Positions 13,300 to 48,453 of a stretch of DNA of 64,000 nt are shown here, one piece after another. The first letter of the stretch is position 1. Each line of letters opens with the position of its first letter. The translations under genes were made by a program, and so were the position numbers. Where the stretch lies: IMG/VR virus record IMGVR_UViG_3300032562_000003, positions 186,001 to 250,000 of that record; one strand, written 5' to 3'. Below the pieces are notes generated by a model, which did no database searches, was not told where the DNA came from, and worked only from the letters and a program-made list of their open reading frames with translations.

Positions 13300-13302
13300 A
13301 GC

Positions 13303-13370
13303 ATAAATAGATGTGAGTCGCGGGACTGCAATCCCCACTCACTCTAATGCTAGAAGGAGCTATCAGCATG
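13303..13370 (+). promoter_or_regulatory. late promoter + conserved structured leader of HNH gene (copy 1)
   Basis: TAAATA 13304-09; GTGAGT/ACTCAC stem (13313-18/13337-42); AAGGAG SD; blocks shared with 24124..24194(-). Confidence 0.7.
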
Positions 13371-14030
13371 TCTATTTATCGTAAAATTTACGAACAGAAT
13401 TTTGGTCCCATACCCAAAGACGGTGACGGAAGAAGTTGCGATGTTCATCATATAGATGGTAACCGCAATAATAATGTACCGGAAAATTTAATCGCATTGT
13501 CTATACAAGATCATTACGATATTCATTATCAGCAAGGAGATTATGGTGCATGTTGGCTCATTTCAAGAAAGCTACGGTTGACGCCAGAGGAACTATCAGA
13601 CCTCGCCAAATTAACCGGCGCCAACCGCATCGCAAACGGCACACATCACTTTTTAAAAAGGCCAGATGGGTCATCGTTAGGAAAAGACAGTGTACTCAGA
13701 CAAACTGAAAACGGGACGAATGCTTTCTCTGGAGGAGAAGTTCAAAGAAAATCTAACGCTAAGCGAGTGAGGGAAGGAACTCACCATTTTCTTAGTGGTG
13801 ATATACAAAGAAGAACTCAACAAAGGTTGGTGGAGAACGGGACTCATCATTTAATGGGGAACGGAGAATTTCAACGAAATGTTCAGAAAACATTGTTAGA
13901 GAATGGAACTCACCACTTTCTTACGAATCATCCAAATAAAATTCAGGTAACTTGTCCGCATTGCAACAAAACTGGCGGAAAAACTAACATGCATCGATAC
14001 CATTTCGATAAGTGTAGGGTCTTAAAATAA
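13368..14030 (+). CDS. HNH homing endonuclease with GTHHF repeats and C-terminal Zn finger
   Basis: HHIDGNRNNNVPENL...HYDIH; repeats NGTHHFL; CPHC...HFDKC; start at ATG 13368 after SD. Confidence 0.85.
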   Translation: MSIYRKIYEQNFGPIPKDGDGRSCDVHHIDGNRNNNVPENLIALSIQDHYDIHYQQGDYGACWLISRKLRLTPEELSDLAKLTGANRIANGTHHFLKRPDGSSLGKDSVLRQTENGTNAFSGGEVQRKSNAKRVREGTHHFLSGDIQRRTQQRLVENGTHHLMGNGEFQRNVQKTLLENGTHHFLTNHPNKIQVTCPHCNKTGGKTNMHRYHFDKCRVLK

Positions 14031-23257: not shown

Positions 23258-23495
23258 CGACATTAACATAAATCAGTGGTTCATGGACCGAGAATTAAGT
23301 CATACCCCTGAACATTTTATAAGATCAAGCACTCCTTTTACTATCGAGTCGCGCATGTGGATTTTGGAAAGCCTTCAAGGCAGATTTTCTACACATTACC
23401 CCAACACATCGACCTATATTATGAATAGAATAGCACTTTGTCCATCGTTTGAAGATCCACAAGAAGCAGTGTTTTACGAACTCAAGTGGGGCTAG
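23244..23495 (+). CDS. small protein with C-terminal F.L.W-type motif
   Basis: likely GTG start 23244; ends SFEDPQEAVFYELKWG. Confidence 0.6.
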   Translation: MKTIDDININQWFMDRELSHTPEHFIRSSTPFTIESRMWILESLQGRFSTHYPNTSTYIMNRIALCPSFEDPQEAVFYELKWG

Positions 23496-24126
23496 GTCTT
23501 ACTAGTTCCCACCCTCCAGTAGCGTTAAGTCCTTTGTTATTTACAATACGACTAATTGCACCGGACTTGAGATTATAACATGTCCTTAATTGATAATTCG
23601 TCATTGATACTACCTCCCCGGTCATACGATTTTTCCAAGTTCTAACAGTATGGTCATACTGCGGATGTTTTTCTTTTTTCTTGGGGTCATTAACAAAATG
23701 ATGAGTCCCGGCAGCAAGTCTGTTTAATTGTCGTTTACTGGCAGCTTCCCTGTCCAACCAATTATGTGTTCCATTAAGAATGCGGTCTCTGTTTAGTTGC
23801 GCTTGGTGCTTGTTGGGCCCAACCCAAGGATGCTTGCCCGTTTTAACTAGCTTGTTAGCATTTTTTGTTGCGAGGGCTACTAGCTCATCGGGAAGTAAGT
23901 TGATCCTACTTGACATTTTTACACAAGCTGCCCAATCACCCTGTGAATAATGAATGTTGTAATGTTCTTGTATAGATACACATTTCAAGTTAGCAGGATT
24001 ATTATTGGAATGATTTCCGTCTATATGATGTATTTCATATGACCGACCCGACTCTTCCTTAGGAATTGGACCGTAGTGATGTTCATAGATATTACGGTAC
24101 TTGTTTGTACCACAATAAATACACAT
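23482..24126 (-). CDS. HNH homing endonuclease (paralogue of 13368..14030)
   Basis: YGPIPK...GRSYEIHHIDGNHSNNNPANL...HYNIHYSQGD; inverted relative to neighbours. Confidence 0.85.
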   Translation of the reverse strand: MCIYCGTNKYRNIYEHHYGPIPKEESGRSYEIHHIDGNHSNNNPANLKCVSIQEHYNIHYSQGDWAACVKMSSRINLLPDELVALATKNANKLVKTGKHPWVGPNKHQAQLNRDRILNGTHNWLDREAASKRQLNRLAAGTHHFVNDPKKKEKHPQYDHTVRTWKNRMTGEVVSMTNYQLRTCYNLKSGAISRIVNNKGLNATGGWELVRPSPT

Positions 24127-24194
24127 GCTGATTGCTACTTATAAGCTGTTAGAGTGAGTGGGTACTAGTAATACTGCGACTCACACTTATTTAT
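24124..24194 (-). promoter_or_regulatory. late promoter + conserved structured leader of HNH gene (copy 2)
   Basis: reverse complement ATAAATA-AG-TGTGAGTCGC...CCCACTCACTCTAA...ATCAGCATG matches copy 1. Confidence 0.7.
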
Positions 24195-42609: not shown

Positions 42610-42634
42610 GCACTTTGTAATGAAGGATAAATAC

Positions 42635-43102
42635 ATGCCTAAGTGTAACATTCTCGTCGGTCTTCCCGCTAGTGGCAAGAGCACCTTTTTGGAAAAGGTG
42701 CAGGCTCGTAATGTCGCGTCTTCGGACAATATCATCGACCAAATTGCTAAGGAACGAGGTTCCACGTACAACGAGGTCTTTGCTGACGCTATGAGCATCG
42801 CTGATGCCCAGTTTTGGAAGCAAATCAAAGCGTACTGCGAAGCCGGTGAGGACTTTGATGTTGATCGTACTAACATGTCGGTCAAGAGCCGTAAGCGCAT
42901 CATTGACATTCTCAAGCCCTATGGCTACACTATCGACGCTATCGTGTTTGAGAAGCCCGACGACGCTGAATGGAATCGCCGCCTGAATTCTCGTATCGGT
43001 AAGACTATTCCGAAACACGTTCTGACTCTTATGGAACAGAATTTTGTCATGCCCACTGAGGCCGAAGGATTTTCTGAGATTCGAGTGTACGCTGCGAGTT
43101 GA
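42635..43102 (+). CDS. P-loop kinase (polynucleotide kinase-like, AAA_33)
   Basis: GLPASGKST, SSD, VDRTN, RLNSR.GK.IP; start ATG 42635. Confidence 0.82.
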   Translation: MPKCNILVGLPASGKSTFLEKVQARNVASSDNIIDQIAKERGSTYNEVFADAMSIADAQFWKQIKAYCEAGEDFDVDRTNMSVKSRKRIIDILKPYGYTIDAIVFEKPDDAEWNRRLNSRIGKTIPKHVLTLMEQNFVMPTEAEGFSEIRVYAAS

Positions 43103-45671: not shown

Positions 45672-46697
45672 TTGAAAACAGCAACAATAGAAATTAAGGA
45701 CGAAGTAAACGTTAAAATTTTAGGACTTGAGTTAGATGTAAGGCGCGCTCTCATGAAAAAATTTGAGTACGAGAAGCCCGGTGCCAGATATCAACCAGCA
45801 GTTCGATTGGGTAGATGGAATGGTAAGATCAGCTATTTTTCTTTAGCAGGGAGTACCTATCTAAATCTACTGGATGAAATCATTCCGATACTAATCGATT
45901 ACGGCTATGACATAGTACTAGACGACAAGAGAAAAAATCACTTAGACCTAAAGTTTGACCTGATAAACGAGAATACTTTTGCTAACATATGCTGGCCCGC
46001 CGGACATGAACGTGAAGGTCAACCTATAATTCTGCGTGATTATCAAGTGGAAATCGTCAATAACTTTTTAGCCAATCCACAGTCACTTCAAGAAATAGCA
46101 ACAGGCGCTGGCAAGACATTAATGACAGCCGCATTGTCTAAAAGTATTGAGCCATATGGTCGATCTATCGTAGTTGTTCCCAACAAGTCGTTGGTAGTAC
46201 AAACCGAAGCAGATTACAAAAATCTTCAACTTGAGGTAGGCGTGTACTTTGGTGATCGAAAGGATTACGGTAAAACACATACCATCTGTACATGGCAATC
46301 ACTGAACAATTTGCTCAAGGTTAAAGCTGAACAAGATCCTAACAAGGATCCTGATATGGAAGACTTTTTCTTTGATGATGTTGTTTGTGTCATGGTTGAT
46401 GAATGTTTTCACGGAGAATCAGTGGTGCTAACCCCGGTTGGATATGTACCCATCAAGGACATTAAAGCCGGAGATAAAGTAATCAATTATTGTGAACAGT
46501 CCGGAACCTTCAAGGAAGATACAGTGGTAAAACAACAGCACAATCTTACTGTGTCGTCCACTGAAAAAATGTATGAGATGGAATTTGATAACGGACGTGT
46601 AATTAGGGTTACTGGAAATCATCAATTTCTAACAAATCTAGGCTGGTGCCGGGCTGACGAACTTACTGAAAATCACGAAATAGTAAATAAAACATAA
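45672..46697 (+). CDS. uvsW: UvsW-like SF2 helicase N-extein (244 aa) fused to split-intein N-half (46404-46694, 97 aa)
   Basis: LRDYQ, ATGAGKT, VMVDE|CFHGES (block A Cys1), TGNHQF (block B); TTG start. Confidence 0.92.
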   Translation: MKTATIEIKDEVNVKILGLELDVRRALMKKFEYEKPGARYQPAVRLGRWNGKISYFSLAGSTYLNLLDEIIPILIDYGYDIVLDDKRKNHLDLKFDLINENTFANICWPAGHEREGQPIILRDYQVEIVNNFLANPQSLQEIATGAGKTLMTAALSKSIEPYGRSIVVVPNKSLVVQTEADYKNLQLEVGVYFGDRKDYGKTHTICTWQSLNNLLKVKAEQDPNKDPDMEDFFFDDVVCVMVDECFHGESVVLTPVGYVPIKDIKAGDKVINYCEQSGTFKEDTVVKQQHNLTVSSTEKMYEMEFDNGRVIRVTGNHQFLTNLGWCRADELTENHEIVNKT

Positions 46698-46703
46698 ATA
46701 CAT

Positions 46704-47645
46704 ATGGCTAAGGCAGGAGTATTCATGAAAATTACATATGAACAATGGAAAGATCGGTTAAACAAGCGACTAGCAGAACATAACCAACAGGTAAGGGTCG
46801 TTACTTTTGGAAAATCAACACTAGAATTATCAACCGGCGAGATATTAATACAGCCCGAGTTTAATAATTTTAAAAAGAGGGTAATGAATTCCAAGACTGA
46901 TCTTTGGGTGAAGAATATGGATTTGCTTCTATCCGGATTAATATCTGATCGGGAAGTCAAGGCTAAGCTTGCTGCAATTGGTGGCGAAGCCGTTCATAAA
47001 TTACATCCTGAACTTAGTAGTCGCAATTTAAATACAGGTGTGCCGTGGAATAAAGGGAAAACAGGACTACAAACTTCTTGGGCGAAGGGTTTGACTAAAC
47101 AAACCGACAGTCGGGTTGCTGCTAGAGTAAATAGCGGGGAAGCAAACGGTATGTATGGTGTAAAAATGTCTGACCAGGATAAAAAATTCCGATCGGATAT
47201 AATGAAGGATAAAATTTTATATGGAGACTTTACCCCAAATTCCAACAATAGAAACACGCACTGGGAAGCAACGTTTAACAGAAAGAAATATAGATCGAGT
47301 TGGGAAGCGTTGTTTCAGTATATGTATCAGGATGCAGCGTATGAAACATTGAGATTAGAATACATTATCAACGGTAATCGAAAAATATACATAGTTGATT
47401 TTGTTGATTATAAAACCAAACAGGTAGTAGAAGTGAAGCCGACGGAGTTATGCCGAGGTAAGATATTTGACGCAAAAATGGTTGCCCTTAAAGAGTGGGC
47501 AGATCAAAATGGGTTTAGTGTCATTGTCGCAACACGGGAATGGCTATTGAATAATAGCTGCCCTTCCGACCTCTCTGGATTTGATGAAAAAACCGCAACA
47601 AAGATAAGGAAGTTATATGAAGCTAATAAGAAAAACCGAAATTGA
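46704..47645 (+). CDS. free-standing homing endonuclease (PD-(D/E)XK/TnsA-like, NUMOD3-like repeats) between intein halves
   Basis: PWNKGK, GEANGMYG, YRSSWE, YIVDF...VEVKP; TAAATA immediately upstream. Confidence 0.75.
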   Translation: MAKAGVFMKITYEQWKDRLNKRLAEHNQQVRVVTFGKSTLELSTGEILIQPEFNNFKKRVMNSKTDLWVKNMDLLLSGLISDREVKAKLAAIGGEAVHKLHPELSSRNLNTGVPWNKGKTGLQTSWAKGLTKQTDSRVAARVNSGEANGMYGVKMSDQDKKFRSDIMKDKILYGDFTPNSNNRNTHWEATFNRKKYRSSWEALFQYMYQDAAYETLRLEYIINGNRKIYIVDFVDYKTKQVVEVKPTELCRGKIFDAKMVALKEWADQNGFSVIVATREWLLNNSCPSDLSGFDEKTATKIRKLYEANKKNRN

Positions 47646-48453
47646 TAAACCTGACGAAGTGTTCAATCTCCACATTGAAAATGATCATAATTACATAGTT
47701 GACGGTGCAGTAGTATCCAACTGTCACATGGCAAAAGCTGATGTTCTCAAGCAAATGCTTACTGGGGTATTCGCTGATGTTCCTATTCGCTGGGGATTAA
47801 CCGGTACCATACCTAAAGCCGAAATGGATCGCGCTTCGATTCTAGTATCTCTTGGGCCAGTCATCGGGAAGTTAGCAGCAAGTGAGCTACAAGATCGAGG
47901 TGTTCTTGCAAGTTGTCACGTTAACATAGTGCAGCTTAAAGATACTTCGGAGTTTACAAACTATCAAAGCGAGTTAAAGTTTCTACTAGAGGACGGCCAT
48001 CGTTTAGACAAAATCGCTGATCTTGTACGAGCCGTCAATAAAACAGGCAACACATTGGTTTTGGTTGATAGAGTAAATGCAGGTAAAGAACTAGTCAGCA
48101 GACTACAAAATTCAGTGTTTGTTAATGGTGGAACAAAACTAACAGAACGCAAAGAAGAATACGATGAGGTTGCGATCAGTGATGATAAGATAATTGTAGC
48201 TACATATGGTGTTGCGGCTGTGGGCATCAACATTCCTCGAATCTTTAATTTGGTTCTCATCGAACCAGGCAAATCATTTGTACGAGTTATACAGAGCATT
48301 GGTCGTGGCATAAGAAAAGCAGAAGACAAAGACCACGTGCAGATTTGGGACGTTACTAGTACGTGTAAGTTTGCAAAGAGGCATTTAACCCAGCGTAAGG
48401 CTTTTTATAAAGAGGCTAAATATCCCTTTACTATAGAGAAACTGGATTACTAA
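47617..48453 (+). CDS. uvsW: split-intein C-half (47617-47721, 35 aa) fused to UvsW C-extein (243 aa)
   Basis: MKLIRK...VFNLHIENDHNYIVDGAVVSN|CHMAK; helicase motifs GLTGT, VGINIP, QSIGRGIR; TAAGGA SD. Confidence 0.92.
   Translation: MKLIRKTEIDKPDEVFNLHIENDHNYIVDGAVVSNCHMAKADVLKQMLTGVFADVPIRWGLTGTIPKAEMDRASILVSLGPVIGKLAASELQDRGVLASCHVNIVQLKDTSEFTNYQSELKFLLEDGHRLDKIADLVRAVNKTGNTLVLVDRVNAGKELVSRLQNSVFVNGGTKLTERKEEYDEVAISDDKIIVATYGVAAVGINIPRIFNLVLIEPGKSFVRVIQSIGRGIRKAEDKDHVQIWDVTSTCKFAKRHLTQRKAFYKEAKYPFTIEKLDY

Follow-up and report, generated by a model that had tools for sequence, protein, structure and literature searches.

A fractured uvsW gene in a lake-water jumbo phage, with a split intein and a free-standing nuclease gene of apparently TnsA-like type

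We analysed a stretch of viral DNA of 64,000 nucleotides (in the following, the window), which corresponds to bases 186001-250000 of the 258,859-bp record IMGVR_UViG_3300032562_000003, estimated to be 73% complete, and in it the gene of the helicase UvsW. The source is an uncultured lake-water jumbo phage (259 kb), whose relatives are the phages Phosso, Atu_ph07 and PA5oct and the Rak2-like phages; the locus is carried by lake-water metagenomes. The uvsW gene is fractured, that is, it consists of three open reading frames (ORFs) on the same (plus) strand: the N-terminal part of uvsW with the N-terminal half of an intein (IntN), a nuclease gene, and the C-terminal half of the intein (IntC) with the rest of uvsW.

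The first ORF (45672-46697) has a TTG start and ends with AAA ACA TAA. Its product begins with the UvsW N-extein of 244 amino acids (aa; 45672-46403), which holds the UvsW_N domain and the first half of the helicase, from motif I to motif II, up to the residues ...VMVDE. It is followed by the 97 aa of IntN (46404-46694), one half of a split class 1 mini-intein, with its Cys1 (CFHGES...) and the block B motif TGNH. The stop codon TAA (46695-46697) lies within a promoter-like heptamer, ATAAATA, and the whole late-promoter-like element, CATAAATA, covers 46693-46700. It is the beginning of a conserved leader of 35 nt (46693-46727), in which a hairpin can be drawn with the 5' arm CATAAATAC (46693-46701), the loop at 46702-46718 and the 3' arm GTATTCATG (46719-46727). 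The free-standing nuclease gene (46725-47645) codes for 306 aa, or for 313 aa if it is read from an upstream ATG at 46704, which is in frame with the first ORF, two codons past its stop, and opens a 313-codon ORF to 47645. In the nuclease, numbered here in its 306-aa form, we find a NUMOD3-like repeat or linker with the motifs PWNKG and SWAKG (residues about 101-146, 47025-47162) and a predicted PD-(D/E)XK catalytic domain (residues 157-284, 47193-47576), with the putative catalytic codons E194 (47304-06), D225 (47397-99), E236 (47430-32) and K238 (47436-38). The third ORF (47617-48453) starts at ATG 47617 in the +1 frame and overlaps the nuclease ORF by 29 nt; an AAGGAAG (47606-47612) that reads like a Shine-Dalgarno (SD) sequence for it lies within the 3' end of the nuclease gene. 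The product reads MKLIRK...DHNYIVDGAVVSN|CHMAKAD, where the bar separates the 35 aa of IntC (47617-47721) from the UvsW C-extein (47722-48453, stop included), which carries the +1 Cys (47722-24), HMAKAD and the C-terminal half of the helicase. Splicing would rebuild the sequence DECH, the helicase motif II. The original prediction, which had been made for this locus before our analysis, is right in all its coordinates, and the motifs YRSSWE, YIVDF, VEVKP and PWNKG that it had read in the nuclease are indeed there.

Both halves of the host gene are recognised by profile searches. The N-extein matches the Pfam families ResIII, DEAD and UvsW_N as well as PHROG 16259 ('DNA helicase') at 3.8e-62, and the C-extein matches Helicase_C and PHROG 9690. 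IntN is covered by matches to Intein_splicing, PT-HINT and Hint at residues 241-338 of its ORF, and it is 55-61% identical to the uvsW IntN of the phages S16 and PM2. For IntC there is a weak match to Intein_splicing (profile positions 126-155); its sequence is 61-100% identical in 87 of the 91 loci that we fetched, all of which end with [SAHT]N|CH. The residues of a class 1 intein are present here (Cys1, TGNH as the block B TxxH, the terminal Asn, which is N35 of IntC, and the +1 Cys), and Cys1, TxxH, the terminal Asn and the +1 Cys are kept wherever a fetched locus still has the ends of the intein. A point against an active intein is its penultimate residue, which is Ser in the window and, over the loci, Ser in 60, Ala in 26 and only rarely His. 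Binding of IntN to IntC is supported by complex prediction: a model of the two halves, each with five extein residues, reached a score of 0.71 against 0.02 for the best control, with at least 94% of the contacts agreeing between runs and a pLDDT (predicted local distance difference test) of 75 for the partner. Such a score was attained for 51 of 78 solved complexes and for 2 of 108 mismatched pairs; in our case, solved split inteins already known to the predictor may account for part of it.

An arrangement of this kind, with IntN, a free endonuclease and IntC, a late promoter, a hairpin and a 3' overlap, was described in 2009 by Dassa, London, Stoddard and Pietrokovski (PMC2677866) under the name of fractured genes. 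The locus in the window shares with them a host gene divided into two adjacent same-strand ORFs with split-intein halves at their inner ends, and a free-standing endonuclease gene between the halves, the 3' end of which overlaps the downstream ORF. Also in common are an RNA hairpin (there bearing TATAAATA) in which a late-promoter element of the T4 type lies shortly before the nuclease start, the phage origin and a host enzyme of DNA metabolism. On the other hand, uvsW, interrupted here in motif II, is not among the eight reported host genes, the nuclease is neither of the GIY-YIG nor of the Vsr-like type, and the relatives of our locus include in-frame fusions of IntN and nuclease. In the papers that we searched there was no description of a uvsW intein or of a TnsA-type homing endonuclease in split inteins. 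The locus thus combines the layout of 2009 with a host gene that was unreported for it in these papers and with a nuclease of a third family, likewise unreported there. In summary, our reading is that of a fractured uvsW gene, in which a split intein at motif II (DE|CH) houses a selfish free-standing homing endonuclease gene with its own late-promoter and hairpin cassette; we give this reading as a whole a probability of roughly 0.75.

What kind of nuclease this is can be seen best from its homologues. The window protein itself matches PHROG 22417 at 6.9e-38 and PHROG 15427 ('endonuclease') at 5.9e-24. The family is large, with 511 proteins found by a word search and 896 clusters at 50% identity by an exhaustive HMMER search, and it is already present in PHROGs, where it is unnamed, and in the cultured phages S16, PM2 and phiR1-RT. 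Of 33 homologues, 19 match the Pfam family TnsA-like_N (PF08722; E<=0.01) and 17 match NUMOD3 (PF07460), several of them exceeding the gathering scores. The invariant residues in our alignment (A2) are E194 (in RSSWE), E207, R210, D225 (IVDF), and E236 and K238 (EVKP). An AlphaFold (AF2) model with a pLDDT of 83.5 has a confident N-terminal domain (1-100) and a catalytic domain of the alpha/beta type, with the NUMOD3-like stretch between them disordered; the low pLDDT in this stretch is what one expects for an extended DNA-binding linker. The top match of the model in Foldseek is TnsA (1t0f_A, probability 0.94-0.97), and an exhaustive aligner (VIA) also places TnsA first, with Z 7.9 over 117 residues, followed by Vsr (Z 6.0) and I-Bth0305I (Z 5.5). 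Two points weigh against this assignment. The window protein has no Pfam match of its own and misses the thresholds for NUMOD3 and for TnsA-like_N (for the latter there is nothing at E<=1), and the scores of the fold matches are middling (Foldseek E 0.06, Z 7.9); for the predicted model they establish a restriction-endonuclease fold rather than a specific family. Together, the invariant E..D..ExK, the top fold match and the Pfam matches of the homologues support a TnsA-like PD-(D/E)XK nuclease with NUMOD3-like repeats, as the original prediction had proposed, and not a Vsr-like EDxHD nuclease.

That the nuclease nevertheless belongs to the Vsr-like homing endonucleases known from fractured genes appears highly improbable to us. 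This family is defined by the EDxHD signature, a set of E, D, H and D with the His as general base (PMC3239194). With its member I-Bth0305I our nuclease shares the order of the domains, with an N-terminal NUMOD-type DNA-binding region and a C-terminal nuclease of the restriction-endonuclease fold, as well as the residence in phage split inteins. The fold matches to Vsr and I-Bth0305I mentioned above also speak for a kinship, as do a few automatic Joint Genome Institute (JGI) annotations as 'very-short-patch-repair endonuclease'. However, there is neither an invariant His nor an EDxHD pattern in the alignment, in which a canonical ExK stands instead of the His, and none of the six Pfam families matched by the 33 homologues is of the Vsr type. 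TnsA ranks first in both fold searches, we detected no sequence similarity, and searches of the PDB with the nuclease sequence and profile returned nothing at E<=10, neither Vsr nor I-Bth0305I. With TnsA, the endonuclease subunit of Tn7, and with T4 gp4 the nuclease has in common the restriction-endonuclease fold and the set E..D..(E/Q)xK. It differs from TnsA in that it has neither the C-terminal domain nor a transposon context of TnsA, and in that it carries NUMOD3-type and other DNA-binding modules and resides inside an intein.

The same three-ORF layout of uvsW is found in all 80 IMG/VR loci and in metagenome contigs, and also in the cultured Salmonella phages S16 and STP4-a and in the Proteus phage PM2 (gp114 / gp114.1 / gp115). 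These cultured phages have the same insertion site, a homologous intein and a nuclease of the same family (36% identical). They differ from the window in that the ATAAATA element is missing and the ORFs overlap in other frames; the nuclease has a distinct Cys-rich N-terminal module, and the middle ORF is annotated as a hypothetical protein. A shorter version of the nuclease lies between two ORFs of the large terminase subunit (terL) in phiR1-RT, TG1, HY03, SG1 and others, and in the Krischvirus TB34 it is fused to the terminase N-fragment in one ORF.

We examined two of these terL loci, from the Yersinia phage phiR1-RT (L002, 1396-4245) and from the Escherichia phage TB34 (L003, 1169-4316). 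Their N-terminal ORF ends with ...IYIDE|CVSKDTKVTI..., and their C-terminal ORF starts with a segment of about 107 aa that ends with ...VESHN|C. Pfam finds no Hint domain here, and the idea that these loci are intein-less was ruled out by their translations, from which we read an atypically split intein with an IntN of about 25-40 aa and an IntC of about 107 aa. It resembles the AceL-TerL split intein. Furthermore, the loci are similar to the unusual terminase locus in the study of fractured genes (PMC2677866).

Alleles of the helicase gene without the element exist as well. The C-terminal half of UvsW is 50-63% identical to the helicases of the jumbo phages Phosso, Atu_ph07, PA5oct and the 121Q/Rak2 group, and in Phosso and PA5oct the helicase is a single uninterrupted gene with DEAH at the insertion site. 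The predicted spliced product of 487 aa aligns without gaps to the Phosso and PA5oct helicases and is collinear with them from residue 2, and therefore the element is polymorphic among the relatives, being present in some and absent in others. A comparison of alleles, as it had been suggested for this locus, thus yields intein-free ones; a contiguous one was not found within the reach of our searches. Paralogues of the nuclease or of the intein are absent from the 259-kb genome, the 2.9-kb locus had no match in a phage collection (megablast), no RNA run was listed for it, and no intein-less joint was seen in the DNA contigs of four lake metagenomes. A lone joint, 46049->47780 (side of 22 nt, 90% likeness), lies off the intein boundaries and was dismissed as stemming from another organism.

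In the lake metagenomes, the Logan contigs break and overlap exactly at 46694-46723, in the leader, and at 47604-47636, at the start of IntC, and the word depth climbs at these stretches (for example from 72.7 to 96.4 and to 127.9 in X2). The region around AAGGAAG in the 3' end of the nuclease gene is highly conserved, and metagenome contigs branch there. Co-occurring phage genotypes seem to share both short stretches identically, and the nuclease gene seems to behave as a cassette bounded by shared sequence.

The distribution of the nuclease also bears on the question whether it is a homing endonuclease at all. It could instead be a domesticated phage nuclease, for example a relative of the head-completion protein gp4, which no longer homes, or never did, and merely resides in the intein gap. 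There are weak matches to PHROG families for 'head closure' (phrog_218 at 7e-5 for the window protein, and at 2e-9 for the TB34 homologue), and these are consistent with T4 gp4, which has been described as a TnsA-like nuclease (PMC7824862). Nevertheless we regard a domesticated nuclease as very unlikely. In every locus examined the gene lies between split-intein halves of conserved genes (uvsW, terL), the N-terminal DNA-binding modules are swappable, and the element is present in some and absent in other related phages. In addition, a control by a late promoter and a hairpin is typical of phage homing endonuclease genes (PMC2677866).

The start codon of the nuclease is probably ATG 46725 and not ATG 46704. 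The original prediction had noted correctly that 46704 is in frame after the IntN stop; as a real start it does not hold. The triplet at this position is ATA in most relatives, and ATG 46704 lacks an SD sequence and lies at or before the predicted start site of a late transcript. ATG 46725 and the preceding SD sequence AGGAG (46715-19), on the other hand, are conserved in the relatives, and the database record P0001 is exactly the 306-aa form of the nuclease. By the rules of T4, a late transcript starts about 6 nt past the promoter motif. The start at 46725 is favoured because the predicted late transcript begins at or beyond 46704.

In the leader between IntN and nuclease, whose 35 nt begin with the motif's C and end with the ATG, the column conservation is 0.91 in the 34 unique loci with canonical spacing, compared with 0.65 in the last 90 nt of IntN and 0.61 in the first 90 nt of the nuclease gene. 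It forms what would be an expression cassette made of the gp55-type late-promoter element CATAAATA, an SD sequence and an ATG. The promoter element is near-invariant in the relatives and is kept even where IntN reads through in another frame. The motif is invariant whichever frame IntN uses and therefore is not conserved for coding.

The element CATAAATAC is complementary to GTATTTATG, which holds the start codon; the SD sequence AGGAG lies in the hairpin loop except for its last G (46719), with which the 3' arm begins. On folding, the motif and the ATG are fully paired in 23 of 39 unique leaders. Perfect stems of 11-12 bp occur in L080 and L087, and different but equivalent compensating stems in L035 and L059. 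Several observations weigh against a hairpin control. The hairpin in the window is weak, with one A.C mismatch, -5.9 kcal/mol and a z of -0.4, and is no better than that of shuffled sequences, and about one third of the unique leaders have no hairpin. Moreover, ribosomes that stop at the TAA in the 5' arm would open the stem, which may make the masking leaky on early mRNA under translation, or may instead couple both ORFs.

A late promoter within a hairpin has been reported for 10 fractured-gene loci and for mobE of phage Aeh1 (PMC2677866). The Aeh1 switch at nrdA/mobE and the switches of I-TevI, soc and e in T4 work in a similar manner. In these systems the start is masked on read-through transcripts by a hairpin whose 5' arm contains the late promoter, and this arm is absent from late transcripts. 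The predicted hairpin in the window differs from these switches in that mainly the start codon would be masked, with the SD sequence mostly in the loop, and in that the stop codon of the upstream ORF lies within the stem. On the T4 and Aeh1 paradigm, early or middle transcripts that read through from upstream would form the hairpin, with the promoter as its 5' arm and the start codon in its 3' arm, and the start would be masked. In late transcripts, whose 5' end is predicted at about 46706-08, the 5' arm would be absent and translation would proceed from ATG 46725.

Is CATAAATA a promoter? It occurs in 8 copies in the window, where 5.5 are expected, and a single octamer is thus not beyond chance; TATAAATA, the T4 consensus, which it matches at 7 of 8 positions, has 2 copies where 6 are expected, and the consensus of the genome itself is NATAAATA. 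The placement of the heptamer is more telling. Of the 91 copies of ATAAATA in the genome, 48 lie at most 60 nt upstream of a same-strand ORF start, compared with about 4% expected in a genome that is 93% coding, and the copies in the window stand 10-50 nt before an SD sequence and an ATG. Among the genes that follow are those for virion structural, baseplate wedge and spanin-like (lysis) proteins as well as homing-endonuclease genes. Furthermore, the phage encodes a gp55-type late sigma factor of 298 aa (G000:C1, about 145.9-146.8 kb; L093 1408-2301, minus strand), which matches PHROG 12791 at 6.3e-75 and T4 gp55 at E 1e-5; it is longer than T4 gp55 (185 aa), and the match is confined to its C-terminal part. 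For the related Rak2-like phages CBB and GAP32, a late-promoter role has been proposed for ATAAATA where it stands upstream of structural genes (PMC5259590). We accept the promoter reading, which the original prediction had put forward, because of the placement of the heptamer, the late-type genes downstream of it, the encoded late sigma factor, the conservation of the leader and the precedent in the Rak2-like phages, and CATAAATA is likely to be a late promoter element.

Potentially, CATAAATA could be conserved only as an element of the RNA, be it as the arm of a translational hairpin, in termination-reinitiation coupling or in RNA processing. In most loci the region of the start codon is exactly complementary to the motif, and ribosomes terminating at the IntN stop, which is placed within the stem or beside it, would unmask the nuclease start. 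We consider an RNA element without a promoter rather unlikely, as the heptamer is concentrated upstream of many unrelated late-type genes that do not have this hairpin, a gp55-type sigma factor is encoded, and the motif is invariant also in leaders that lack the complementary arm (L021-28, L071-79).

Two HNH homing-endonuclease genes of the window deserve mention here, at 13302-14030 (plus strand) and 23482-24194 (minus strand), with matches to PHROG 12324 at E 5e-48 and 2.5e-29. Both are preceded by ATAAATA and then by a common leader, ..GTGAGTCGC.., which suggests that several selfish nuclease genes of this phage use one late-promoter cassette.

According to the original prediction, the promoter, being at the same time the stop codon of IntN, is what splits the intein. 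The overlap itself is real: the TAA lies inside CATAAATA, and the IntN stop has the same position inside the heptamer in 51 of about 85 related loci, many of which are near-duplicates. In 29 of them the stop lies 15 nt downstream, in CTAAAGC; the remainder comprise a few IntN stops elsewhere and two fusions of IntN and nuclease. The AT-rich leader closes two of the three reading frames. There is a second break, the frame change and overlap between nuclease and IntC, which is common to all relatives. A single ORF runs through UvsW-N, IntN and nuclease in L011/P0157, P0235 and further fused proteins (those of this kind are P0142, P0157, P0223, P0235, P0261 and L011), and IntC with UvsW-C is still a separate ORF. 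Since the fused forms still translate IntC-UvsW-C separately, the break between nuclease and IntC, and not the TAA, is the universal split. The stop is also outside the promoter in one third of the loci. The overlap of promoter and stop is therefore incidental, a by-product of the AT-rich leader, and not the cause of the split.

This bears directly on the origin of the locus. The original prediction left two alternatives, and the first of them starts from a contiguous intein that held the nuclease as an in-frame domain and was split by the gain of the promoter and stop, so that the window would be a snapshot of this process. The common frame of IntN and nuclease, here and in 51 related loci, agrees with a contiguous ancestor. 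The fused forms listed above also branch, on long branches, outside the large split clade of a maximum-likelihood tree of 59 distinct nucleases; since this tree has no root, the deep ancestor may have been fused. However, an allele that is contiguous through IntC was not found (a word-limited search gave only N-fused ORFs of 617-676 aa), and the break between nuclease and IntC is universal. A complete expression cassette such as the leader would hardly come into being within a linker. In the TerL inteins, nucleases of this family are free-standing at a different, atypical split point.

The direction of change can be read in one case, and there it runs the other way. L082 has one ORF through IntN and nuclease and retains the leader with two substitutions, CATAAGTAC for the promoter and stop and CGAAAGC for the second stop; SD-like purines and an ATG follow. 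It is nested in the tree (support 100/99) among split forms with intact leaders. Since L082 is nested in split forms and has retained the mutated promoter, the SD sequence and the ATG, the change there was from split to fused. In view of all this, a contiguous intein caught in the act of being split appears unlikely, and the second alternative, a family of homing nucleases that lives in mini-inteins, fits best.

The change in L082 matches a step in the model of fractured genes, which postulates a fusion by which endonucleases become domains of inteins (PMC2677866). At the one uvsW site we see a series of forms: the free-standing nuclease gene with promoter, hairpin and SD sequence, the fusion in L082 by two point mutations, through which the promoter and the two stops of the leader were lost, and older N-fused forms, with the break on the C side persisting in all of them. 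Maybe the nuclease family is a living series of intermediates on the way from free-standing homing endonucleases to intein domains, and the IntN stop in the hairpin arm may couple translation of the nuclease to the synthesis of UvsW-N; we offer this tentatively, as a possibility that we find less likely to be right than wrong. If it is true, S16, PM2 and phiR1-RT would allow direct tests of a new mode of coupling and of the fusion that the fractured-gene model has long postulated.

Returning to the fractured uvsW gene as a home of a selfish nuclease gene, we infer late transcription, masking, trans-splicing and homing from the sequence features described above. Three proteins would be made, UvsW-N-IntN, the nuclease and IntC-UvsW-C. 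The intein halves would associate and trans-splice to yield the UvsW of 487 aa. The nuclease would cut the intein-less uvsW (DEAH) of co-infecting phages, and repair would then copy the whole cassette of intein and nuclease into the cut gene.

The locus adds a third nuclease lineage (canonical PD-(D/E)XK, TnsA-like, with NUMOD3) and a new host gene to the phenomenon of fractured genes and split inteins. As the family comprises about 900 clusters at 50% identity and occurs in cultivable phages, homing, trans-splicing and the control by the late promoter can be tested. The in-frame fusions of IntN and nuclease, one of which is clearly derived from a split form, are concrete material for the route from free-standing to intein-embedded endonucleases. 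Furthermore, the UvsW inteins, split into 97 and 35 residues, and the atypically split TerL inteins are candidate tools for protein ligation.

Some further observations concern related genes. In some relatives (the protein P0142 of 798 aa and the loci L036, L049, L053 and L055) the uvsW N-extein has a further insertion. For P0142 it is a second intein that follows Walker A at ...SSGK|C and ends with ...HHN|T; the four loci have the N-extein's first part about 2 kb upstream of the nuclease. The uvsW gene thus seems to be a repeated target of inteins. In the Prevotella phage Lak-B2 (386020-387429), a distant match to IntN (33% identical) lies about 0.8 kb upstream of a match to the nuclease's catalytic domain (39% identical), which suggests, from the sequence matches, the same kind of cassette in an unannotated gene of the Lak megaphages.

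Finally, another copy of the promoter-like motif may correct a start codon elsewhere in the window. The sequence GATAAATAC at 42626-42642 is placed directly before ATG 42640, which is probably the true start of a polynucleotide-kinase/ATPase-like ORF listed from 42581 or 42608. The gap between motif and ATG is 2 nt here, and a late transcript would be leaderless or start within the gene.

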